Assembly: GCA_001655205.1 (NCBI GenBank)
Contig: LPNZ01008298.1
Span: 1-35,408, forward strand
From: Lenisia limosa
Taxonomy: Eukaryota; Protista; Breviatea
Length of the DNA: 35,408 nucleotides
Reading direction: 5' to 3'
Shown here: positions 4,079 through 35,408 of the stretch, in pieces
Layout: each line of letters begins with the position of its first letter
Position numbering within the stretch: position 1 is the stretch's first letter
Translations under genes and position numbers: made by a program
The notes under the pieces: model-generated
What the model saw: only the letters and a program-made list of their open reading frames with translations
The model's database searches: none
Told to the model about the DNA's origin: nothing

Positions 4079-4790
4079 GGTTGGTGTTTAAAACCGCGAA
4101 AATGATTAAAACCGCGAACATGATTAAAACCGCGAACAAGCCTTTTTTTTATATACCCCTTTTAATCAAGCTATTCATGACAAAGCCATAACAAGACGTA
4201 ACACTATGAGGTCTTTTCTCATTCACGCATTGAAAACATATAGTAGAAGTTGGAAGCTGGAAATAAGAAAGAATAAAGGAAATAGTAATGTACAACATAA
4301 GAACATAAGGAAACATAAAAGCTACTTCGCCTTCTTCTGTACGGGTGATTCTGAAAAATGAGAAAACGACACTCTCTCAAAGTAACATACTTTTGGCTGC
4401 CTTTTTTGGGGAGGTAGCTTTCTTTTTTGGGGATACCTTGTTTTGACGAACAGCTGGGAGGACATTATCAATTAATCAAGTGATTTTTTAGAATAGAAAA
4501 ATACATGAAACGCAAAGTCAAACCCCTTCTCACCTTGAGCCTCAGCCTTCTTCTTTTTCTTGATATCTTCAAGAAGACGCTCTTCCCAGAAGGCAGGGTC
4601 ATGGGGAATGGCCTGGCTCTCGGTACCGACCTCGAATGGAAGCTCCTCTTCAGTTGCAGGGGCAGCCTCGACAATAAAGATGTCCCAGGGAAATGTGGTT
4701 GGATTTTTGTGGAAGAAACTGACCTCAGCATCAGTGAGAGCTTGATGATAATTGGCAATAGCCATCCAAGCACCCTTCGCANNNNNNNNN
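4079..4790 (-). mobile_element. pogo/Tigger-like element family A, copy 1 (3' TIR plus C-terminal coding part)
   Basis: TIR GGTTGGTGTTTAAAACCGCG with three 18-bp units TTAAAACCGCGAACATGA. Homologous to 5164-5880. Confidence 0.8.
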
Positions 4791-5163
4791 NCGATGATTA
4801 GTAAAAGTCTGTCGTCAGTTCTCGTCACAAATTTACTTACAAATCAAATAAAATGCAGGAAAATCCATAAAATTGTTGTGGCTATCAGACTGTATACTTT
4901 TTATCAAGGGGTAAAATATCACTTTTCTATCAAAAAATTGTCGCTGTTCAAAAAAAAAAAAATCGGGCTTATAAAGGGGAAAAAAATCAATTCACGGATT
5001 TTTTGAAAAATTGCAAAAATGATTTTTGAGCAGTTCTGAACACTTTTCATTTTTTTGAAAAATATCACATTTCCAAAAAATATCACATTTCTGGACTCTA
5101 CAGATATGTAGGTATTATATACATATGTAGGTATATTTATCGATCATATACATGTATATATTA

Positions 5164-6565
5164 GGTGTTTAAAACCGCGAACATTATTAAAACCGCGAAC
5201 AAGTCTTTGTTTTTTTTATGTACCCCTTTTAATCAAGCTAATCATGACAAAGCTGTTTTCCCATTACAAGACGTAACACTATGAGGTCGTTTCTCATTCA
5301 CGCATTGAAAACATATATTAGAAGTTGGAAGCTGGAAATAAGAAAGAATAAAGGAAATAGTAATGTACAACATTAGAACATAAGGAAGCATAAAAGCTAC
5401 TTCGCCTTCTTCTTTACAGGTGATTCTGAAAAATGAGAAAACGACACTCTCTCAAAGTAACATACTTTTGGTTGCCTTTTTGGGGGAGGTAGCTTTCTTT
5501 TTTGGGGAAACCTTGTTTTGACGAGCAGCTGGGAGGACATTATCAATAAATCAAGTGATTTTTTAGAATAGAACAATACATGAAACGCAAAGTCAAACCC
5601 CTTCTCACCTTGAGCCTCAGCCTTCTTCTTTTTCTTGATATCTTCAAGAAGACGCTCTTCCCAGAAGGCAGGGTCATGGGGGGCAATGGCCTGGCGCTCG
5701 GTACCGACCTCGAATGGAAGCTCCTCTTCAGTTGCAGGGGCTTTTTGTGGAAGAAATCGACCTCAGCATCAGTGAGAGCAATTGGCAATAGCCATCCAAG
5801 CACCCTTCGCAGCCTCGGCATCACCTCCTTTAGCCACCTTGATAAGGTCGATAAGCTCCTGGGTATTCAGGATGCATGAANNNNNNNNNNNNNNNNNNNN
5901 NNNNNNNNNNNNNNNNNNNNNNNNNNNNNNNNNNNNNNNNNNNNNNNNNNNNNNNNNNNNNNNNNNNNNNNNNNNNNNNNNNNNNNNNNNNNNNNNNNNN
6001 NNNNNNNNNNNNNNNNNNNNNNNNNNNNNNNNNNNNNNNNNNNNGGTGAGGGAAACAGCTTGACCTGGATACCAGAGTTTTTGAAGGCATTGAGGGTGTT
6101 GGTGGGTTCAGCAGCCTGGTTGTAGGCCTTCAGGGTAGAAAGAAGAACATGACAACGAAGAAGAGCAGCAGAAGAGATACCTTCAACAACCTGGGGGGAC
6201 TTCTTGAGAAGGGATGTGAGAGTGGAGCGGAGGATAGCCTTGAAGATAGCGAAAGTAATGTGATCAAGGGCCTGAGTAACTTGAGAGGTATGGGAGGGGA
6301 GCAGGTAGAGGTCAATGTTATGTGCCTTGAGAAGGGCAAGGGCAACAACTGAGTATCGAGATNNNNNNNNNNNNNNNNNNNNNNNNNNNNNNNNNNNNNN
6401 NNNNNNNNNNNNNNNNNNNNNNNNNNNNNNNNNNNNNNGTTGTACGTTCCAATATACTCCAGAAAGGTGTCACATGTCTAGAAGAGAGTAAGATATCAAA
6501 AATATCGTTTACTAACCTGCCATCCATTAGGTGCGTAAATTGAAGCAGCGGCATATCTGGACACA
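5164..6565 (-). mobile_element. pogo-like family A, copy 2 (3' TIR to mid-DDE domain)
   Basis: Same TIR units. Encodes ..HNIDLYLLP..QALDHITFAIFKA and SCILNTQELIDLIK. Segment 6438-6565 matches 8636-8765. Confidence 0.85.
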
Positions 6566-8065: not shown

Positions 8066-10150
8066 GGTTGGTGGTTAAAACCGCGAACATGATTAAAACC
8101 GCGAACAAGCCAAAANNNNNNNNNNAGAAAAGCTTCTGGGTATTCAGGATGCATGAATAAAGGGCAGTGCGGTGGGGAGGAAGGAGAAGAGCAGAAAATA
8201 CTGAAGCAGAGTCTGGGAAATGGGAGGCAAGAGTGGATGGGGTGATGGTGACGGATNNNNNNNNNNNNNNNNNNNNNNNNNNNNNNNNNNNNNNNNNNNN
8301 NNNNNNNNNNNNNNNNNNNNNNNNNNNNNNNNNNNNNNNNNNNNNNNNNNNNNNNNNNNNNNNNNNNNNNNNNNNNNNNNNNNNNNNNNNNNNNNNNNNN
8401 NNNNNNNNNNNNNNNNNNNNNNTGGAGGATAGCCTTGAAGATAGCGAAAGTAATGCAATCAAGGGCCTGAGTAACTTGAGAGGTATGGGAGGGGAGTAGG
8501 TAGAGGTCAATGTTATGTGCCTTGAGAAGGGCAAGGGCAACAACTGAGTATCGAGATGAGTGTCCATCAGTAATCAGCAGGGCACGAGCAGTTGAAGGAA
8601 GTCCAAGAGCCTTGCGGTGAGCCTCCACAGCTGGAATATAGTACGTTCCAATGTACTCCAGAAAGGTGTCACATGTCTAGAAGAGAGTAAGATATCAAAA
8701 ATATCGTTAACTAACCTGCCATCCATTAGGTGCGTGAATTGAAGCAGCGGCATATCTGGACAGAATCTCAGATTCTTCTCTAATTGTCTTCTGATTGAGA
8801 AGAAGAACGGGAGTGATGGGACTAAGGCTTGAACTACAAAGTGAGATTGTGAAAACTTAAAAAAATAGTTGTGTGTCTTTTTTCACAATGAACTCATACC
8901 TGATGGCACCAACAATTAAAAAAAAAAAGGGTAATGTGCTGAATTTGTGTCCTTCTTTGGCATATGCACGCTTAGCCTCCTCAAGAGTAACAACCTTTCT
9001 CTGCTTCATTCCTGAGATTTGAACCATAGTCTCATCCATGTTGGTGATCAAAGATGGGTGGCATTGCTTGATGGCATGTGAAAGTGCAGAGAGGTGTTGG
9101 GTGACTGTTGATAAAGCCCAATGCCCATGTTCTTGAAAATGACACCTTTTGAGATTGATGGCGGTAAACCTCTTGAGCAGCCTAACATTTATTAGTCTTT
9201 TTTTGTTTGGTGATGAATATAATTTTGTTTCCCCCAGATATAATAGTCGTTAATTTTTGAATACTATAAATCACAGCAACAGTATCCCCCGAACAAGCGC
9301 AACAAACCATATTTTGAACATCTCTGATCGTAGGTGGAGTTCTGTCTAAGATAGCATCAAAGATGCTTGAGAGGAGGTTTGGTTCAAGGTCTGAATTGAA
9401 CTTGAGGGGTCTTCCACCATTTTCAGACTGAGGGGATCCTCCATTCTTGTACTTTTGTACAAAAGTGGGTTTAATCTAGAAATAGATGAATCTTGAGCGA
9501 CATTCTATTGTATCACATGGTATTATTTGGAAATATTATCAATATATGCTCAAATAAGAAAGACTTTTCATCAAACCTTTAGGAAGTCGGCAGCTGATCG
9601 AACGGTGATGGTTTGGTTCATCGAATCAGAAATATTAAACACAGATGTAACCTTTTCACAATCGGTCAGGGAGGACCATTGAGGAAAGTGACGCAGTTCG
9701 GTAGTCAGCCAATTCATCTAAATTAATAAGAAGAGCAGACTTAAATAATCTAGTTTACATCAATAGGCGGTAGGGGAAAGGAATAATGAGTTACTATGTA
9801 GCATCTACTTCACTGAAATCTGAAAAGCACAAAGAGAAAGGAAACAACGAAAAACAGTATTTCATCCCATGATAACACCAGTTCAGTTAATACAATTACG
9901 TATTTTATTAAAATAATAAGGATAAGAAGAGGAAAAGGTGCATTCAGAGAGGCAGGAGATGAGGGAGCAAATAACGGTTTTTAGTGATCACCCTCATAAA
10001 TGAAAACTTGTTCACCTTTCGTTACTTTCGCTTCGCTTTTGACTGTAATTATACTAAATACAACAAATGATTCCTTAAACTATTCAAAAGGGGGAAAGGA
10101 AGGGAAAATGGACAAATTAACTTTTAATGATTTGTGCCCAAAAAAATGAT
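8066..10150 (-). mobile_element. pogo-like family A, copy 3, near-complete intron-containing transposase (CENP-B/Tc5 HTH + DDE_1), ATG ~9717
   Basis: GGRPLKFNSDLEPNLL..FSRTWALGFIN (HTH), ITNMDET, NGWQ/TCDTFLEY, LLITDGHSSR, LLPSHTSQVTQALDC. TA-flanked TIR at 8066; no 5' TIR seen. Confidence 0.9.
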
Positions 10151-10186: not shown

Positions 10187-11300
10187 CGGATGGTGAGGGA
10201 AGCAGATGACCTGGATACCAGAGTTTTTGAAGGCAGGGTGTTGGTGGGTTCAGCAGCCTGGTTGTAGGCCTTCAGGGTGGAAAGAAGAACATGACAACGA
10301 AGAAGAGCAGTAGAAGAGATACCTTCAACAACCTGGGGGGACTTCTTGAGGAAATGTGAGAGTGGAGCGGAGGATAGCCTTGAAGATAGCGAAAGTTATG
10401 CGATCCAGGGCTTCCCCCAGATACAATAGTCGTTAATTTTTGAATACTATAAATCACAGCAACAGCATCTCCCTAACAAGCGCAACAAACCATATTTTGG
10501 ACATCTTTGATCGTAGGTGGAGTTCTGTCTAAGATAGCATCAAAGATTCTTGAGAGGAGGTTTGGTTCAAGATCTGAATTGAACTTGAGGGGTCTTCCAC
10601 CCTTTTCAGACTGAGGGGATCCTCCATTCTTGTACTTTTGTACAAAAGTGGGTTTCATCTAGAAATAGATGAATCTTGAGCGACATTCGACTGTAAGATG
10701 GTATTGTTTGGAAATATTATCAATATGTGCTCAAATAAGAAAGTCTTTTCATCAACCCTTAAGGAAGTCGGCAGCTGATCAAACGGTGATGGTTTGGTTC
10801 ATCGAATCAGCAATATTAAACACAGCTGTAACCTTTTCACAATCGGTCAGAGAGGACCATTGAGGAAAGTGACGCAGTTCGGTTGTCAGCCAATTTATCT
10901 AAATTAATAAGAAGAGCAGACTTAAATAATCTAGTTTACATTCAATAGGCGGTAGGGGGAAGGAATATTGAGTTACTATGAAGCATCTACTTCACTGAAA
11001 TATGAAAAGCACAAAGAGAAAGGAAACAACGTAAAACAGTCTTTCATCCCATAATAACCAGTTCAGGTAATACAATTACGTATTTTATTAAAATAATAAA
11101 GATAAGAAGAAGAAAAGGTGCATTCAGAGAGGCAGGAGATGAGGGAAATAACGGTTTTTAGTGATCACCCTCACATTTCGTTACTTTCGCTTCGCTTTTG
11201 ACTGTACAACAAATGATTCCTTCTACTATTCAAAAGGGGGAAAGGAAGGGGAAATGGACAAATTAATTTTTAATGATTTGTGCCCAAAAAATATGATTTA
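10187..11300 (-). mobile_element. pogo-like family A, copy 4, internally deleted
   Basis: 10187-10405 matches 6045-6270; 10410-11300 matches 9230-10150. The junction near 10410 removes about 750 bp containing the first two catalytic Asp motifs. Confidence 0.85.
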
Positions 11301-15798: not shown

Positions 15799-16316
15799 TA
15801 TGATATACTATATGAAAGGTGACATTGAGTTTCAAAAGTTGATCGTGTCTTCAAAGTTGTCAACTTCACTTTTGCCTTTTTCCTCCAAGCTTGATACCCA
15901 CTCTTCCCGTTCTCCACCCGCAACCATTTTGAAACAGGAAATAGAAAAGAATGCAACAGGTAAGGGCAAAAGGGTTGATGAGCTGACATTAATTGGTTAG
16001 ATTATTAAGGCTATCTAAAGTCGAAAAGACCAGAATTTGCCAGAACCATATAAATAGGACTTGTTTAAAACGCGGAGAGAGACAAAGGTGAAATGTTGAA
16101 GCAGTTGAAAAACACTATCAGAAGACTTAGTACATCTAGCCCAGTAGAATGAACCCCAATTTCTCTTACAGGATAACAATGGTCAGCCAACNNNNNNNNN
16201 NNNNNNNNNNNNNNNNNNNNNNNNNNNNNNNNNNNNNNNNNNNNNNNNNNNNNNNNNNNNNNNNNNNNNNNNNNNNNNNNNNNNNNNNNNNNNNNNNNNN
16301 NNNNNNNNNNNNNNNC

Positions 16317-16391: not shown

Positions 16392-17109
16392 ATTCTAAGG
16401 TTTATCTTTTTTCGATTGATACCCCCGAGTGGGGGGATGTTTTTTTCTAGTTTTCTACGCACTCCATTTGTTCGATTTTGTGGTATTGTTGTTAGCCAGT
16501 GTATTGTATTTATTCGAGATGTCGAGATGTTGATGCATTTCCTTCTATTTCTTGGAAGCGGGGGTGAGGGAAGAACAATTTGGAGGCCTTGGTAGCGGGG
16601 GATTCTCTTGCACTTGCTTGAAACTTGAGAACGCGGAAAAGTCGGTTTGACAACTTTCCGGGTCTGGAACCAGAGAGGAGGACCCGGCGGCGGATCGGGA
16701 AAAATGTACTTGCTAAGAAGAATAAACACACTTGTTTCAATAACTGGTCATAATCACATACCTCCTTTTTGGGACCTCATTCGACCATGTTACACTGTTC
16801 TGAAAGTGGCTCTCTATTTTCATAGTTGTAGTTAAAATCACACATTATACTCGAAACCGGTATTTTTTAAAAGAAATTACGATGTAATCAGCAAAATAAG
16901 ACCCCTTTTTACACTGGTACAAGTTCCCCAACCCCAGACCCCAGGGCCACCCCCCTGTGGTTTTGGTGGTTTTGGTGTGGTTTGCTCGTTTGCTTTGGGT
17001 TGAGTTGTTGAGTTTGTGTTCAGGTTGTGTTCAAAGTGTTCAAGTTGTGTTGCAGTTGGGCAGTTGGGTCCGAATTGGGTGTGAGTCTGTGAGTTGGGTT
17101 TCAGCAAGA

Positions 17110-17771
17110 ATGAGAACCAGAGCAACATCTCAGTTTCGTATTTTTTACGAAAGAGGAGATCTGCCAATTGCTGTTGAGCATAGAGCTCTTGGTAATAAAG
17201 TGTGCCAACTTTTTTTGTTATTTAGATTCAGTGGAAGGTCGAAATTGAAAAGCTTGATTATCACCATTATTTGCCAATATTCTTTGATGGGCTGAGGGAA
17301 ACAGATGTACCAGAATGTTTTATTATTATTTAGGAGCCATACAAGTTCCTTGCAAGACAAGGAGTTGAAGATTTGCTCAACAATGGGGGGCAAAAGATTG
17401 AGCTTGTGATTCCTCAACTTATCATTCCATTGAAACAGGCATTGAATTCAAAAAATATTCATATCATTTGTTCAACCCTCCAAGTTATTCAACAACTTGT
17501 TCTGAGTAGTGAAATGGTGGGAAGATTACTGGTGTCGTACTACAGACAGCTACTACCTGTTTTCAACGTTTTTAAGAACAGTAATAAAAATATTGGTTTT
17601 TTTTCAAAGTTCTTATTTGGGGACAATATTGACTACAGTCAACAAAAACGAGAAAATGTTGGTGACTTGATCCAAGAGACCCTTGAGCTACTTGAACTTC
17701 ATGGGGGTGAAGACGCTTTTATAAACATTAAGTACATGGTCCCAACATATGAAAGTGTTGTCCTCAACTAA
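17110..17771 (+). CDS. PACRG: Parkin co-regulated gene protein (axonemal inner-junction protein), 3 introns: 17200-17225, 17307-17333, 17596-17619
   Basis: Spliced product [136 protein letters not shown]. An upstream exon is not excluded. Confidence 0.97.
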
Positions 17772-19419
17772 TCTTTTGTATATTCTTCAATGTAGAAAAA
17801 ATGTGATATTTTGAGCAATTTTTTTTGAAAGAGGGTTACACCATACTGAAATGGAAAGATAACAGTGTATCGGAAACAAATCGAAACAAACTGGCCACTC
17901 TCTACATAAATTGATAAAATAAGTACGTTTCAACCCCAAAAATTGCCAAACAAAAAAACATGGTGATGTGATCACTAGACATTGGTGGTTAGCCAGTACC
18001 CCCAGCTGCTGCTGGGTTCTCGGCACTTCCCTGGACGCCGGCGGGTATATTCTCGGAAAATTAGTCTCTTCCGCTCAAGTTACTTATTTCGTAGTTTTTA
18101 CACTCTATATTTCTAATTCCCTTCTCAGCTAGTTCTCTGGGCTTGTCATAAAAGACATGTTTGGTTGGGGAATCCCTCTTCATGACTTCCCTATCGTATT
18201 CTGTTGTTAATTGTCAACACTTACGTCAAATTCTACAGGCTCTCCTCCCTCACGATTGTTTCCTTTGTGATCTCTCCTTTTTTTCCTAACCTCATCACCG
18301 CAGGTCATTGAGGGACCTCAATTTGAGGACCCGGTCCCCATATGCTTCGATGGAGGTTGTTTAATGCCTAGACTTCCAGGACTGCATTCTGTAGACCACG
18401 AAGGCAAGTCACCCTCTTCCCCATCGACTCAAATGTTATTCTTTCGTTTCTTCAAATGTTACTCCACCCCCGCCAGACCTTTTGTAATCAATATTATATC
18501 TTTGTGATTAATTATAATATTTGTATTATCATACAAACATGTACCTTTCTCTCTCTACTCTGATACGTTAGGTTCAAGTAGCTCCGCACCTTTTGCCGAA
18601 TTGCGTGCATGGTGCACCGTGACTCCTCCAGACAGAAGGTCCTCTTTCTAAGCGATGACTATGTTACTCGGCGAGAATGGTGAGAAAAGACTATGCTTAC
18701 CTGGATTTTATATTTAGTATTCTTTATTCATTTTTTTTAGCTCCGAAGATAGCAACTGACCGTCAAATTAAATTTTTCAATGATCTCCTCAAGAAGCTCG
18801 CTGAAACGTCGCTAAAAGTTAGTTTTCAGATGTTTGGGGTGTCACTTTTTTGTGTGCTTATATGAATGGATTGGAGCTTTTGTTGATAATATTCCCGGTA
18901 GGCACATCGTGGATCGAAAGAGCCGTTCGCTTATAAGCTGCCTCATTGACGTCTTGGACACAGCGCGGGCTCTGATGGGGCAGTTTGGTATCAAAGGTTA
19001 GCCGTATCAAAGTGGGGTTAAAGCGCCTTTTTTAGTAGCCAAGTAGGACAAGGATCAGTTTAAGTCGGTTTTTGGGAATGGTCAAATATTTTTTTTAAAA
19101 AAAGGAATTCTCATTTTCTTGAGTAATCACCCTTCATTTTCTTTTCTCTCTGTACTCTTCATTTAAGAGGTATCAGTCGCCTAACCCATATCCAAACAAC
19201 AATACTTACAACTTGTATATGATATATAATATAGATTTACGCATCAGAAGTAAGCTGAAAGATACACTATTTGAAAAATCGTTCTTTTCTGATCTTGCCC
19301 CTCTTCCCCTTCTCGGCAGTCTTTTAGAAATAGAAAAAGGGAAGACTTTTTTTGCAAGTATCGAGAAAATTCCCAAATAAGCCATTTAATTTAACCCCGC
19401 TTAAATGAACACTTATAGT

Positions 19420-21480
19420 TTTAGAAGAATCTGAAGGCAACAGAAACCGGATGGGCAAGCTTGTGCAGTTCAAGGTCCCTGCCACAGAAGGCACAGTCGC
19501 AGCGTCTACAGCTAATGCCAACAGTGCGGTGACGTATGCTGTCGTACGTTCCCTTTTGGCTTGTAGCGTTCTTCCGCTTGACGATCCGAGCTTCGATGCT
19601 GACGCGGATGGAGTTTACATGGGAATAATCTTCTCTTTTGCGTTTGCTGTAGCAAATGATACTTCTGCTAACACTTCAGACTTGTTTAGGTAGGTATCAG
19701 CCATTCTTCCGTGATTCCTTTTTTTAAAAAACTTAATCAACTAGAGATGTAATTGTCTGGTTTGTATTACTTGTGTGAATGATGGAGACGTGCCATCGTT
19801 TCGTGTTTTATGTTTTTCCTGTACCAGTAGTAATGTTAATGTTTGTGTTCTTCCATTTCAAGAAGCATTGTGTAGAGTTCAATTCCANNNNNNNNNNCTA
19901 CATGAATACTACAGCGCTAAATATTATTGATGAATCTGCTCATGTTGCCCCTTCCCAATACTTTTTGCGTCCTGCAAGCAATGGAATGATCGCCTTGTTG
20001 GCGAACTCAATATTGTCACGATCTCCACCCTAAGGCAGGTAACACTCAATAAAGCCGAGGATATGTCAGCAAAATCCCCACCCCCCCCCTCTACACAATC
20101 TATCTATTGGACTTACAAAAACTATTTACCTTGATAGCAAGCATGAAATTGGTAAAGTGCAGGGAAAGCAAGCGGCCTGAAGGGGTATCCCGAACTGAGT
20201 AGCCACTGGCCACATGGGCAATGGGGAATTTGGCAAAGTGGAGTTTTGAAAGTCTTGAATTAGTATAATACACATACAGAACTTTGTTAGTGACACTCTA
20301 GCAGTATTAAGGATCATCACCATCCTGTCATATTTCGGCATTTTGTTCCCGTCGAACTCCATAGGCCCCCCATTGGCGGAGCAGACATTGAAGAGCAAAT
20401 CTGGTTACATCAAAAAAGGAACCTTCGTATTCTCTGCAGATACCTGCCCCAAAGTGCCAAAGGGTGTGGAAGAGCCCCAAGCCCGACTTTGTCAAAAAAA
20501 AAATAACTTTAGTGGGCTGGCACACATCCTTGCCCTGGACAACCTTGGCGGACTCCTCAATTGACATGGAGCCCACATCACCAATTCTACTCTATTAGAC
20601 ACCGCCCCCAATGTAATATGAATACCTACCCCCCAACCGGATGGGAAGTGACCCAAGGGCGGATATCGATTCCGCAAGGGATTTGATCAGCTGGTTGAGC
20701 TTGATTGAGCCTGGGGAAAGATGTGGTTATATCCAAAGAATGAAACAGCATACCGTTAATTGTCCCTTCATTCTCATGAATGAGAGCTTGGTTGCGAATG
20801 AGGGTTTGTTTTGAGCTTTGGGTGTTGAAGTAGTGAGCTGAACAATTACTCTTTGGAATCCGATAAGAGTATAACAATTACGTTGAGGGTGATAAAGTTC
20901 CAAAATCATACGATATAATGGTAAAATATGATGAGTGATAAACTATTTGTGTGATCTTCTAAATATACTAATAAGCATAATTACACAACCAACTTTGAAA
21001 TGAAGCTCTGGTTCACATTCCAAATCATTAGTGTCCTTTATTTCACCATCTTTGGGCATCTGACTTGTTATGAAGGATGTAAATGGCTTGAATAATGATC
21101 ATTATACCAGTGACAATCCTTTCGCTTAGTTATTATTATGAAGTTGGTTGTTGTCATGTAGGTCGGTTGGTGGTGGTGGGGAGCAAGGGGAGTGAAAGTG
21201 CCTTTAAAAAGTAATACACCCCCTACTTTGAATTTTCTGAACCAGCCTTTGATATACCCTGTTATACAGCCTCACGGCTGAATCACTGTTCTTTTTAGAA
21301 TTTGTTGAATGTACAGTCCACAAATTTATCCTTGTTTCTGCTAATCTCTATAGCCACCGTTGACAAAGCTACTCTTGCCAAAGAAGCTGGAGATTATCTC
21401 AAAACACTCGGTGAAGCGACCATCAAAGTAAGACTTGAGGTCATGATGCTCTCTTGCCAATCATAATGCTGCATGAGGCT
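19420..21480 (-). pseudogene. Second, heavily decayed piggyBac-like transposase
   Basis: Minus-strand remnants in expected order: FEIISSFF, LYHPQRNCYT-LIGFQ..QNKPSFATKL, KVIFF(D), GGDRDN..RKKYW, and a C-terminal SCRRCDCAFCGRDLELH Cys/His cluster. Many stops and frameshifts. Confidence 0.5.
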
Positions 21481-23456
21481 CCCACAAGAACCTCTTATTT
21501 TCATTTTAGAAATATCTCCAAAAAGTCCAACTGTTCTTCAAATATGTCAACAGAAAGCGATGCGCTAGTCTGGTAGATTATATACAATATTTATTTCTTT
21601 GCGGGACCGGCAAACCCCTCTAAAACCCAATCATTTTTTATAATATTTTTTTTTTGCTTTTTTCTTAGTTTAAATCTCCTTTTCAGCATATTTTCCACCT
21701 GTTTGATCTCCAAAATGGGAATATTCAATTATGGTCCTGGTTATAACGAAGAGTTAAGCCTCAAATGGGCTCCCCCCCAATAATCATTGTTTTTATTGTG
21801 TCTCCCCCCCACACTCAAAATGGGCTTTTTTATGAGCATTGTTTTGATTGTGTTTTCTTTGTAGATACAGACCCAACAAGTAATCAGAGTAGAGACAACA
21901 AACAAAACATGTCAGCTTGGACAAAACTCATTAAATATAATATGTATCCCAATCATTATTCGAAGAGAAACATGTATATTCTACCATCAATAGAGCACAA
22001 AACAAAAAAAAATAAGACCCCCATTTCTTCTTCTTCTTTGGGTTAATAGCCCTGGCCTTAGCTACACGGCACTTGGCATTAGTTGTCAGTTCCTTGACAC
22101 CCTCCACATTCTCAAAGAAAAACTAATATAATCAATACAAATTTTATAAACCTTTGGGCCGCAGGAGAGGCCATGAGCAGAATCAATTCGTTTTTTGCGA
22201 AGCACAGTCTCCTTTAGGTCATCTTCGGCAGCAACGAGTTCGCCCGGCTTCAGTAAAAAAACGCTCTCGCCCTACTCAAATGATGTAAATCAATACTAAA
22301 TACAAATATTTACTGGGGATAAGAACTATGGCATAGAAAATAAGACCAACAACGACACCACAAAAAACCTACCAGCAGCGTTCATGCTCCGGACAAGGTC
22401 CATTCGGTGCAAGAATCTTGAGAATAATGAGGGGTGGGGGAGGGGCATATCATTCACAACCAGAAAACTGAGCATACCAGTAGCCTCAATCTCAGCCTTC
22501 GCCTGACCAACTGCCTGTTTCCTCTCAACATCTAGTATCTCTCTCTCCTCCGAGCACCGTTCCGCCAATGATGCCATGCTACGACGTCGGCAGATTTCGA
22601 CAGCGTGGCATGTTTTCAATGACGGAAGCTACATCAGTCAACATCGTTAGCCACCACAAATCCAAAACTTGAAGTTCCTTATTATTTAGAAAAATTAAAC
22701 TGTGTGAATTGGTACAAATTTGTTCTCCGCGAGAGACATAAAAGGTGCTTACCTCTTCTGGAAGAACCGATAGCGGACTGTCCGGGCGAAGCCTGAGATC
22801 GTTTTGATCTTTGACCAACAACAAAATGTCAAAGGCGTCCACACCATCACAATATGAAGAGATATTGGATTATAGTATTTCCCAATCCTTCTAATACATA
22901 ATATACACATTATATCTTACAAACCTTCGGCGGCAGAGTTGGCCCTTCTGACTATGGGCCTTCAAAAGCTCAAATCAAAGGTTCCTTACTTTCCAACATC
23001 ATTGTGGTCAACGTTATCGCCTGAAAGAAGTCAACGGAGGCTTTCGAATAAAAATTGACAACATAGTTGTGTGTGGCTTCATGTCTCAGGGTCCTCAGGA
23101 GATAGGCTGGAGTGTGGGATTCGATAAAATGAGGAATGATATCCTTTGATACAGCATCTGTGAATACTATCTCTACACTAATAACACTGAACTAATAAAA
23201 TAATCAGCTTATATCTATATTCTCGTTTTTCCACCGGTTTTCCTGTTTTCTTTCCTTTTTAATATTAATTAATCTTTTTTCGCCAAAAGGAGTAAGAGGG
23301 GTGATTTTTGGCAAAAGCAGGAAAAGTGGTGGGGGAACGCCGCCAGATCCGTAACCAGATCCCTGGATCCCATCAATTTCTGGGAGTTTCAGCCCCTTTG
23401 GGGTTTGGGTTCAGTTTGGGTTGTTTAGTACATGCTTTCCAGAAAAACTGAATACT

Positions 23457-23723
23457 ATGGCAAGGAGGAGAAGAAAAGCCCAATCTTCTGGTAAAGTTAA
23501 GAGCCCCGGTTTATTGCAATTGTTTGATTGTCCATGGTGTAATTTTGAAGCCACTGTTACTACTTACTTGTTTGTTTTTGCTTTTTTAACTTGAAATTAT
23601 TCAACTAAGATCGGCAGTATTGAATGTTCTGCTTGTGGAGAGTGCTTTAAATGTGCTATTAGTGAATTATCTCAACCAATTGACGTTTTTTCTGAATGGA
23701 TAGATGTTTTTGATATCCAATAA
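23457..23723 (+). CDS. ELF1: Transcription elongation factor Elf1 (zinc ribbon), 80 aa, one intron (best fit 23570-23593)
   Basis: MARRRRKAQ..LFDCPWCNFEATVTTYL|NYSTKIGSIECSACGECFKCAISELSQPIDVFSEWID..* has two CxxC pairs and the conserved L..PIDV(F/Y)S.WID tail. Missed by the ORF track. Confidence 0.93.
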
Positions 23724-24279
23724 ATAATTTCTCACACTAAAACTCCTTCCATTTTGCAAACCCAGACTTTACATGCGAGTTTGAGCGGATGGTTGAAGGA
23801 TTACGATATTTCAAACTTTTAAGTTTGTATTTCAGTTGTATTTGGCTTAAATACAACTAGGTTGTTGGGGATTCTAGTGTTTGAACAAGTGTCCACAAAC
23901 CATCTCAGAATTTCAAATTCCAGAATATTTCAGCTCAGGTTTTGGAACTTTCGACTTTTGATTGGAATTTTTGAATTGGTTACACCTTATGCCTTGGGGA
24001 GCTACCTGAGATCTGCCTGAGGTTGGCTGATTGGCCTTGGCCCCAAGGCCCCAAACTTGGCCCAACATGAAGGTAAAGTGGTAAAGTAATTTCTGAACAA
24101 TTTTTACTCCATGGGCGCAAAATGGAGGTAAAAAAGATCAGGGATGGGGGTCTGACCTGGAGGCATATACAAGGCATATATATCCAAGGGGCCGCGGATC
24201 TCGGTAAAGTGACGACCTCCAACTCCAGTCCTCCCCGGATCTCCACGAACTTCGTCCGATCTTGGCCTGATCTTTTTTT

Positions 24280-34941: not shown

Positions 34942-35408
34942 GCCTGGACGGGTAAACCCGATAAAACCCGATAAGTTTTTTTGTTCTTTTGGTTTGAAGA
35001 TTATACCTGGAACATTTATTAAAACCGATGGCTGAGATTAAAGATCATCAAAAAACAAATACTTTCAGACACAATAATATATTTGAGTCCAATAATACTC
35101 AGAGAAATTCAATAAAATGTCAAGTGGAAAAAAATATTTTTTGGAAAAATACAAATGCAATTAAGTTTAAATGTAGTTCCTTAGGGGAACTCTTAGTTTC
35201 GAAAGAGGATAAAGAAGGTGATGGAAGGGACAAAAAACAAAAAAAGTTTGGAGATCAGTAAAAAAAAAAATTGTGCCCCCAAAAAATATGAAATTTTTAA
35301 TGTCCTTTTTTTTTTCTTATCCAAGCTCTCTTGAGTACTCTGAAGAACAAGTTTATACATAGTTAAGAACATTGTGCAAGATGGAAGCAGGTGACGAGCA
35401 GTCAATCG
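34942..35408 (+). repeat. Second copy of the piggyBac-1 terminus, running off the window
   Basis: Matches 719-1186; preceded by ATAT. Confidence 0.95.

Follow-up and report, generated by a model that had tools for sequence, protein, structure and literature searches.

Here we present a 24-nt stretch within the ELF1 gene of the breviate Lenisia limosa, at positions 23570-23593 of the 35,408-nt piece of DNA analysed as a whole (the window), which is very probably a real and constitutive spliceosomal micro-intron with a GT at its start and a TG at its end. With similar confidence we predict that this stretch must leave every functional ELF1 mRNA, the RNA being cut at these very bases. The terminal AG of introns is among the firmest rules of eukaryotic gene structure, and its structural basis is RNA-RNA pairing in the catalytic core (10.1101/212811). 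If our reading is correct, essential single-copy genes such as ELF1 rely on a sole GT-TG splice, which would mean that position -2 of the 3' splice site can be freed in nature. Furthermore, the organism would offer a natural system for the study of 3' splice-site choice at a branch-to-3' distance of a few bases.

Structure of the ELF1 gene

The ELF1 gene lies on the + strand, from an ATG at 23457-23459 to a TAA stop codon at 23721-23723. Exon 1 (23457-23569) begins with the Met codon, includes the first CxxC pair, CPWC, and ends within a Leu codon after its bases TT. Exon 2 (23594-23723, with the TAA included) supplies the third base of this Leu codon, continues with NYSTKIGSIE, and carries the second CxxC pair, CSAC, as well as the SQPIDVFSEWID motif. 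When the gene is read without splicing, the ORF from the ATG at 23457 gives MARRRRKAQSSGKVKSPGLLQLFDCPWCNFEATVTTYLFVFAFLT and is then ended by a TGA at 23592-23594, as the original prediction had stated; this TGA is in frame with the ATG and lies across the predicted 3' splice junction (TG|A). Beyond the TGA, the same frame reads NYSTKIGSIECSACGECFKCAISELSQPIDVFSEWIDVFDIQ up to the TAA, so that across the whole stretch the unspliced translation is ...TTYLFVFAFLT*NYSTK...

The predicted micro-intron itself, GTTTGTTTTTGCTTTTTTAACTTG, starts with GTTTG and ends in ...TTAACTTG; its 5' end is GTTTGTTT, with the GT at 23570-23571. It consists of 67% T, as compared with 29-35% in exons (35% in those of ELF1). 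The only two A residues of the stretch (23588-23589, 4-5 nt from the 3' end) are found inside TTAAC (23586-23590, + strand), a branch-site-like motif of the YTRAY form that may serve as the branch point. At the 3' end there is a TG (23592-23593), so the stretch lacks the AG that ends U2-type introns. Downstream of it, the first AG comes after 16 nt (23608-23609), and its use with the donor at 23570 would produce a 40-nt intron that shifts the reading frame. With the GT-TG splice, the junction expected in the mRNA is ...ACTTACTT|AAATTATTC.

Family evidence for the splice boundary

The two exons align collinearly with the Pfam Elf1 profile (PF05129): residues 3-35 of exon 1 correspond to profile positions 2-35 (22.3 bits, E=1.5e-4 alone), and residues 3-39 of exon 2 to positions 41-77 (46.3 bits alone, with a cut-off of 29.8). 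Removal of the 24 nt leaves exactly five residues, T, Y, L, N and Y, for the five profile positions (36-40) that are unmatched. The spliced product then reads C-PW-C NFEATVTTYLNYSTKIGSIE C-SA-C, in which 20 residues separate the cysteine pairs.

An exhaustive HMMER search with exon 2 against 1.84 billion representatives was used to gather 122 representatives of the Elf1 family. Among the 67 that have both cysteine pairs, the CxxC-to-CxxC spacing is 20 residues in 62; it is 18-19 in three, 21 in one, and 26 in one, the last being a mis-match of the pattern. None of these 67 representatives has a spacer of 16 or 28 residues. Within the spacer, L or M occupies position 10, and V, I or T position 16. 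Of 63 relatives, 62 have G at position 17, and 59 have D (48) or N (11) at position 11, where F is found in none. The GT-TG product NFEATVTTYLNYSTKIGSIE agrees with the family at positions 10, 11, 16 and 17, and the four-cysteine zinc ribbon is obtained only after 23570-23593 has been removed. Both elements of the original claim, that this removal restores the 20-residue CxxC spacing and that it places L-(D/N)-x4-IG in register, were thus borne out by the relatives.

The boundary was also assessed with an HMM made from 60 Elf1 representatives, with which all in-frame, stop-free deletions of 15-51 nt near the site (425 variants) were scored. The 24-nt deletion 23570-23593 (GT...TG) scored best of the 425 (90.8 bits), tied with 23571-23594 (TT...GA), which encodes the same protein. 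Lower scores were obtained for the 24-nt GT-AT deletion 23574-23597 (87.5 bits), the unspliced reading frame (77.7 bits, X standing for the stop), the 36-nt GT-AG deletion 23574-23609 (75.7 bits, leaving a 16-residue spacer) and the 48-nt, in-frame GT-AG deletion 23570-23617 (64.8 bits, leaving a 12-residue spacer). The original prediction was right that 23574-23609 has GT-AG ends and shortens the spacer to 16 residues; its further statement that this is the only in-frame GT-AG choice nearby does not stand, given 23570-23617, which scores still worse. The AAT (Asn) codon and the 20-residue spacer are both retained only when the deletion ends at 23593 or 23594, and only with an end at 23593 does the deleted stretch start with GT.

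In all other respects the spliced ELF1 would be an ordinary, 80-residue member of the Elf1/ELOF1 zinc-ribbon transcription elongation factors, with no notable difference from them. It has in common with the family the basic N-terminus, the S-x-P-I-D-V-(Y/F)-S-(D/E)-W-I-D motif, and the CxxC-20-CxxC arrangement, in which L-(D/N) and I-G fall in register.

A candidate second case in PACRG

A second gene with a predicted GT-TG intron, PACRG, is located 6 kb upstream of ELF1 on the same + strand (17110-17771, with a TAA stop at 17769-17771). Its product matches Pfam ParcG with E=5e-52, and the nearest named homologue, at 77% identity, is that of the breviate Pygsuia biforma (EukProt EP00033). The gene is divided into exons at 17110-17199, 17226-17306, 17334-17595 and 17620-17771. 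Intron 1 (17200-17225, 26 nt, ending in ...GTTATTTAG) and intron 2 (17307-17333, 27 nt, ending in ...ATTATTTAG) are canonical GT-AG introns, and splicing of intron 1 gives a product collinear with the homologues. The candidate intron 3 (17596-17619) is a GT...TG stretch of 24 nt, 62% T, which ends in ...CTTATTTG.

The sequence of this candidate, GTTTTTTTTCAAAGTTCTTATTTG, contains no in-frame stop and codes for the eight residues GFFSKFLF between ...KNI and GDNIDY... These residues are missing from all seven aligned homologues, that of Pygsuia included. Deletion of the 24 nt is the top-scoring variant, with 360.4 bits against 347.9 undeleted (+12.5). There are six equal-scoring placements of the 24-nt deletion, and 17596-17619 is the only one that starts with GT, in which case it ends with TG. 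The GT...AG pair inside the region is 14 nt long and shifts the frame into a stop. That PACRG would show the same event as ELF1, as had been proposed from the sequence, is supported both by the insert without counterpart in the homologues and by the rank of the 24-nt deletion. As an observation apart, the PACRG product, with its start at 17110, begins about 35 residues later than its homologues (compared with Pygsuia); either it has a genuinely short N-terminus or an exon further upstream has been overlooked.

Features common to the introns

The four introns of ELF1 and PACRG in the window all start with GT and are 24-27 nt in length, and at their 3' ends TTAT or TAAC is followed by TT(A)G. 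Over the 33,208 window positions examined on each strand, GT...TG 24-mers with at least 14 T occur five times on the + strand and twice on the - strand; two of the five on the + strand are the alignment-defined inserts of ELF1 and PACRG. Because such 24-mers are rare in the window, the T-rich GT...TG stretches of the two genes exceed what chance would provide. No 24-mer in the exons of ELF1 or PACRG has more than 13 T.

Both genes end in TAA, and nothing pointing to a variant genetic code was seen in the window genes. A Pfam scan of ten further window ORFs gave only a piggyBac-type transposase fragment and no further host-gene introns, and an Rfam scan of the window returned no snRNA or other RNA family.

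Accuracy of the DNA sequence

Two runs of a 2016 study were matched, one DNA-like (X1) and the other a small polyA metatranscriptome (X2). At the ELF1 site, window positions 23250-23950 are reproduced without any difference in a Logan contig of X1 that is 1443 nt long and has a word depth of 46.8. This contig has no inserted or deleted letter near 23590, the only listed indel variants being those at 23272-23331, in the upstream repeat. At the PACRG site, an X1 Logan contig (1167 nt, depth 38.4) aligns with 0 gaps over 16950-18055, and the same 24 nt are present in a separate ENA assembly, ERZ3820729 (NODE_5410, locus L001, 2779 nt). Thus neither at ELF1 nor at PACRG is a TTAG found in the separate assemblies of DNA reads, as would be expected had an A been dropped from the window. 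One set of reads may lie behind the window, the Logan contigs and the ENA assembly alike, so that these comparisons exclude an error of the assembler rather than one of the library. That an A was lost at both sites, at 38-47x depth, is very unlikely. The GT-TG boundary originally predicted for ELF1 is therefore favoured by the Pfam collinearity, the cysteine spacing, the residue at spacer position 11, the first rank among the 425 variants, the PACRG case and the DNA assemblies.

Two further observations were made on these contigs. Just upstream of ELF1, 23298-23393 is a multi-copy repeat with a summed X1 word depth of about 620, as compared with about 47 over the gene, and many short variant contigs terminate in it; no repeat common to the regions upstream of ELF1 and PACRG was found within the window. 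Also, locus L001, which belongs to a public metagenome assembly, fills the window N gap at 16192-16315 with 113 bases of actual sequence.

Searches for transcripts and proteins

The RNA run X2 has no contig on the coding region of ELF1 or PACRG; its coverage is limited to stretches between 18.0 and 19.9 kb that derive from repeats, and to one rich in G/T that lies upstream of PACRG. The latter (16974-17097, just upstream of the PACRG start) is contained in an X2 contig of 156 nt and depth 87, arranged head-to-tail, the letters AG linking 17097 to 16974. This RNA form may come from a G/T-rich transcript that is repeated or circular, or else from a loop of the assembly. Another RNA contig (186 nt, depth 19.5), in the repeat-rich region at 18994-19423, skips 428 nt with GT..AG ends, which could represent either a conventional long intron among the tiny ones or a shorter repeat copy located elsewhere.

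None of the proteins in a collection of 5.8 billion, queried with the exon 1 frame, has the ELF1 N-terminus, and PACRG is present there only as an unspliced ORF fragment. The HMMER search with exon 2 among 1.84 billion representatives returned only family members, at most 58% identical and none of them from this organism. Patterns for the spliced junctions of ELF1 and PACRG were absent from JGI metagenome contigs.

Alternative explanations

The main competitor among canonical introns is that of 36 nt at 23574-23609, which would leave the ELF1 protein with a shortened zinc-ribbon hairpin. On splice signals alone it is plausible, being in frame with a GT start and an AG end, and its TCAAC plus TAAG 3' end resembles the TTAT plus TTAG of the PACRG GT-AG introns. 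However, the score of its product falls below even that of the unspliced frame with X at the stop, its 16-residue spacer occurs in none of the family representatives, and the deletion takes out the near-invariant D/N position. It is also longer than all four window introns, and it leaves PACRG unexplained, where the GT...AG pair offers only a frame-shifting 14 nt. We consider this reading very improbable. We likewise place little weight on a 24-nt intron with other limits, either GT-AT at 23574-23597 (product ...YLFYSTK...) or TT-GA at 23571-23594, although both retain the 20-residue spacer and the second ties for the best score. The GT-AT version places F at spacer position 11 and loses the terminal G, and the TT-GA version lacks the GT that opens both clear GT-AG introns of the window, so that either one is highly unlikely. 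Exceedingly improbable is an error of sequencing or assembly, by which the genome truly has TTAG and an ordinary 25-nt GT-AG intron has been deprived of its A. Such an intron would yield the identical ELF1 product, and ACTTG and ATTTG are each one A away from an AG-ending form such as ATTTAG. Against it, the ELF1 site is the same in a separately made Logan contig of high word depth that has no insertion variant there, the PACRG site is unchanged in both its Logan contig and ERZ3820729, and the same mistake would be needed at two sites of one window.

Alternatively, there may be no splicing at all, with ELF1 a pseudogene broken by a 24-nt insertion, or with the TGA read through or recoded and the eight extra residues kept. 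The absence of X2 RNA contigs on ELF1 agrees with this, and the PACRG stretch, which has no stop, is translatable in principle. The ELF1 ORF is otherwise intact, however, with its four cysteines and the SQPIDVFSEWID motif retained, and the insert is hydrophobic and inside the zinc-ribbon hairpin, where it would create a 28-residue spacer that no relative has. Moreover, two unrelated genes have inserts that are alike in length, composition and ends, and both genes end in TAA, with nothing to suggest a variant code. To the unspliced readings we accord hardly any probability. Several other processes were considered and rejected. A deletion between the ACTTG direct repeats would be of 23 nt and out of frame. 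The 5' splice site of U12-type (minor) introns has the form RTATCCTT, which the ELF1 5' end, GTTTGTTT, does not have. Internal eliminated sequences of the ciliate type are excised at the DNA level between TA repeats, and the segment is then absent from the somatic DNA; in ELF1, the TA pairs are 22 or 33 nt apart; excision between the former would disrupt the frame, excision between the latter would leave a stop (TAA), and the DNA contigs contain the segment at full depth. Programmed translational bypass, as in gene 60 of T4, uses matched take-off and landing codons with resumption in frame. The TTG codons at 23568-23570 and 23591-23593 could form such a pair, but the restart at 23594 would read AAA TTA TTC AAC TAA, out of frame and with a stop after four codons.

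Proposed mechanism

For the GT-TG intron of ELF1, we propose that the GU of the 5' splice site is recognised in the usual way, and that U2 pairs at UUAAC, which holds the sole adenosines of the intron and would provide the branch point. The exons would then be ligated at the G that lies 4 nt past the branch adenosine, behind the U-rich tract. The 3' end is probably set, in a ruler-like manner, by a short fixed distance from the branch in combination with the terminal G. This G would still be able to pair with G+1 at the 5' splice site; the canonical A(-2) would be dispensable.

In the yeast P complex, the 3' splice site pairs through its G(-1) with G(+1) of the 5' splice site and through its A(-2) with the branch adenosine (bioRxiv 10.1101/212811). 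In light of these pairings, an intron that keeps G(-1) and frees position -2 would be relaxed to the least extent possible. In yeast without Prp18, use is made of non-AG "BG" 3' ends that lie close to the branch and follow poly(U) tracts, and a short distance from branch to 3' end renders Prp18 and Slu7 dispensable in yeast (PMC10711555). It is from these two behaviours that our proposal of a fixed distance plus a terminal G is drawn. The minimum branch-to-3'-end distance known in yeast is 10 nt (PMC10711555); since the 4 nt in ELF1 is far under this minimum, our assignment of the branch may be wrong.

The introns of ELF1 and PACRG, the two on which the idea draws here, suggest a spliceosome with relaxed acceptor recognition. 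As a wider hypothesis, which we rate only a little above even, the major spliceosome of this breviate may constitutively remove introns of 21-28 nt that end in any base plus G (TG, CG, GG or AG). The ruler would be a terminal G located 4-5 nt past the branch adenosine behind a U tract, and A(-2), perhaps along with Prp18/Slu7 and U2AF35, would be dispensable.

Comparison with known systems

Tiny introns are found in Paramecium (~25 nt), Stentor (~15 nt) and the nucleomorphs of chlorarachniophytes (18-21 nt). The introns of such genomes fall in a narrow size range of ~15-30 nt, are AT- or T-rich, and have the branch site very near the 3' end. The ELF1 intron is similar to them in size and composition, and would be so in its putative branch site. 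To our knowledge, these tiny-intron genomes keep GT-AG ends. In the literature searched, we found no description of non-AG introns in Lenisia or in other breviates.

In human, the TG 3' splice sites known in U2-type introns are all alternatives to a neighbouring AG, none being an intron's only site (Szafranski et al. 2007, PMC2374985). These human acceptors, like the one predicted for ELF1, belong to U2-type GT introns that end in TG instead of AG (PMC2374985). In ELF1, by contrast, the TG would be the sole productive site of a 24-nt intron, with the next AG 16 nt off and out of frame. A TG-AG tandem acceptor of the human type was rejected, as the ELF1 intron has no nearby AG, the next one, 23608-23609, being frame-shifting.

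The closest match in mechanism is provided by the "BG" sites of yeast without Prp18, where TG, CG and GG ends near the branch point lie behind U-rich tracts and the terminal G contacts the first base of the intron (PMC10711555). Those sites, however, are low-level errors of a mutant (PMC10711555), whereas the TG of ELF1 would be a normal and required site. Non-canonical introns are also found genome-wide in the tunicate Fritillaria borealis, where they have been tied to duplicated U2AF subunits (PMC13326754). In Fritillaria both ends of the introns differ (PMC13326754), whereas in ELF1 and PACRG the 5' GT is kept and position -2 at the 3' end alone varies.

If the hypothesis is true, the organism would parallel in nature the phenotype of yeast from which prp18 has been deleted, and its genome as a whole would be an exception to the AG rule. 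There is also a consequence for annotation, in that gene finders limited to GT-AG introns will overlook such genes or cut them short; in the public protein collection no protein has been called for ELF1, and PACRG is represented by an unspliced fragment. The breviate gene inventories used in studies of eukaryote evolution would then be biased.

Other features of the window

The piggyBac-type transposase fragment mentioned above is located at 1417-1761 on the - strand (Pfam DDE_Tnp_1_7, E=2e-7). The rest of the window is mostly made up of repeats and gaps, with 18 runs of N. Near-identical pairs of ORFs are present at 775-1038 and 34998-35258, at 4475-4843 and 5400-5762, and at 9185-9475 and 10476-10658.
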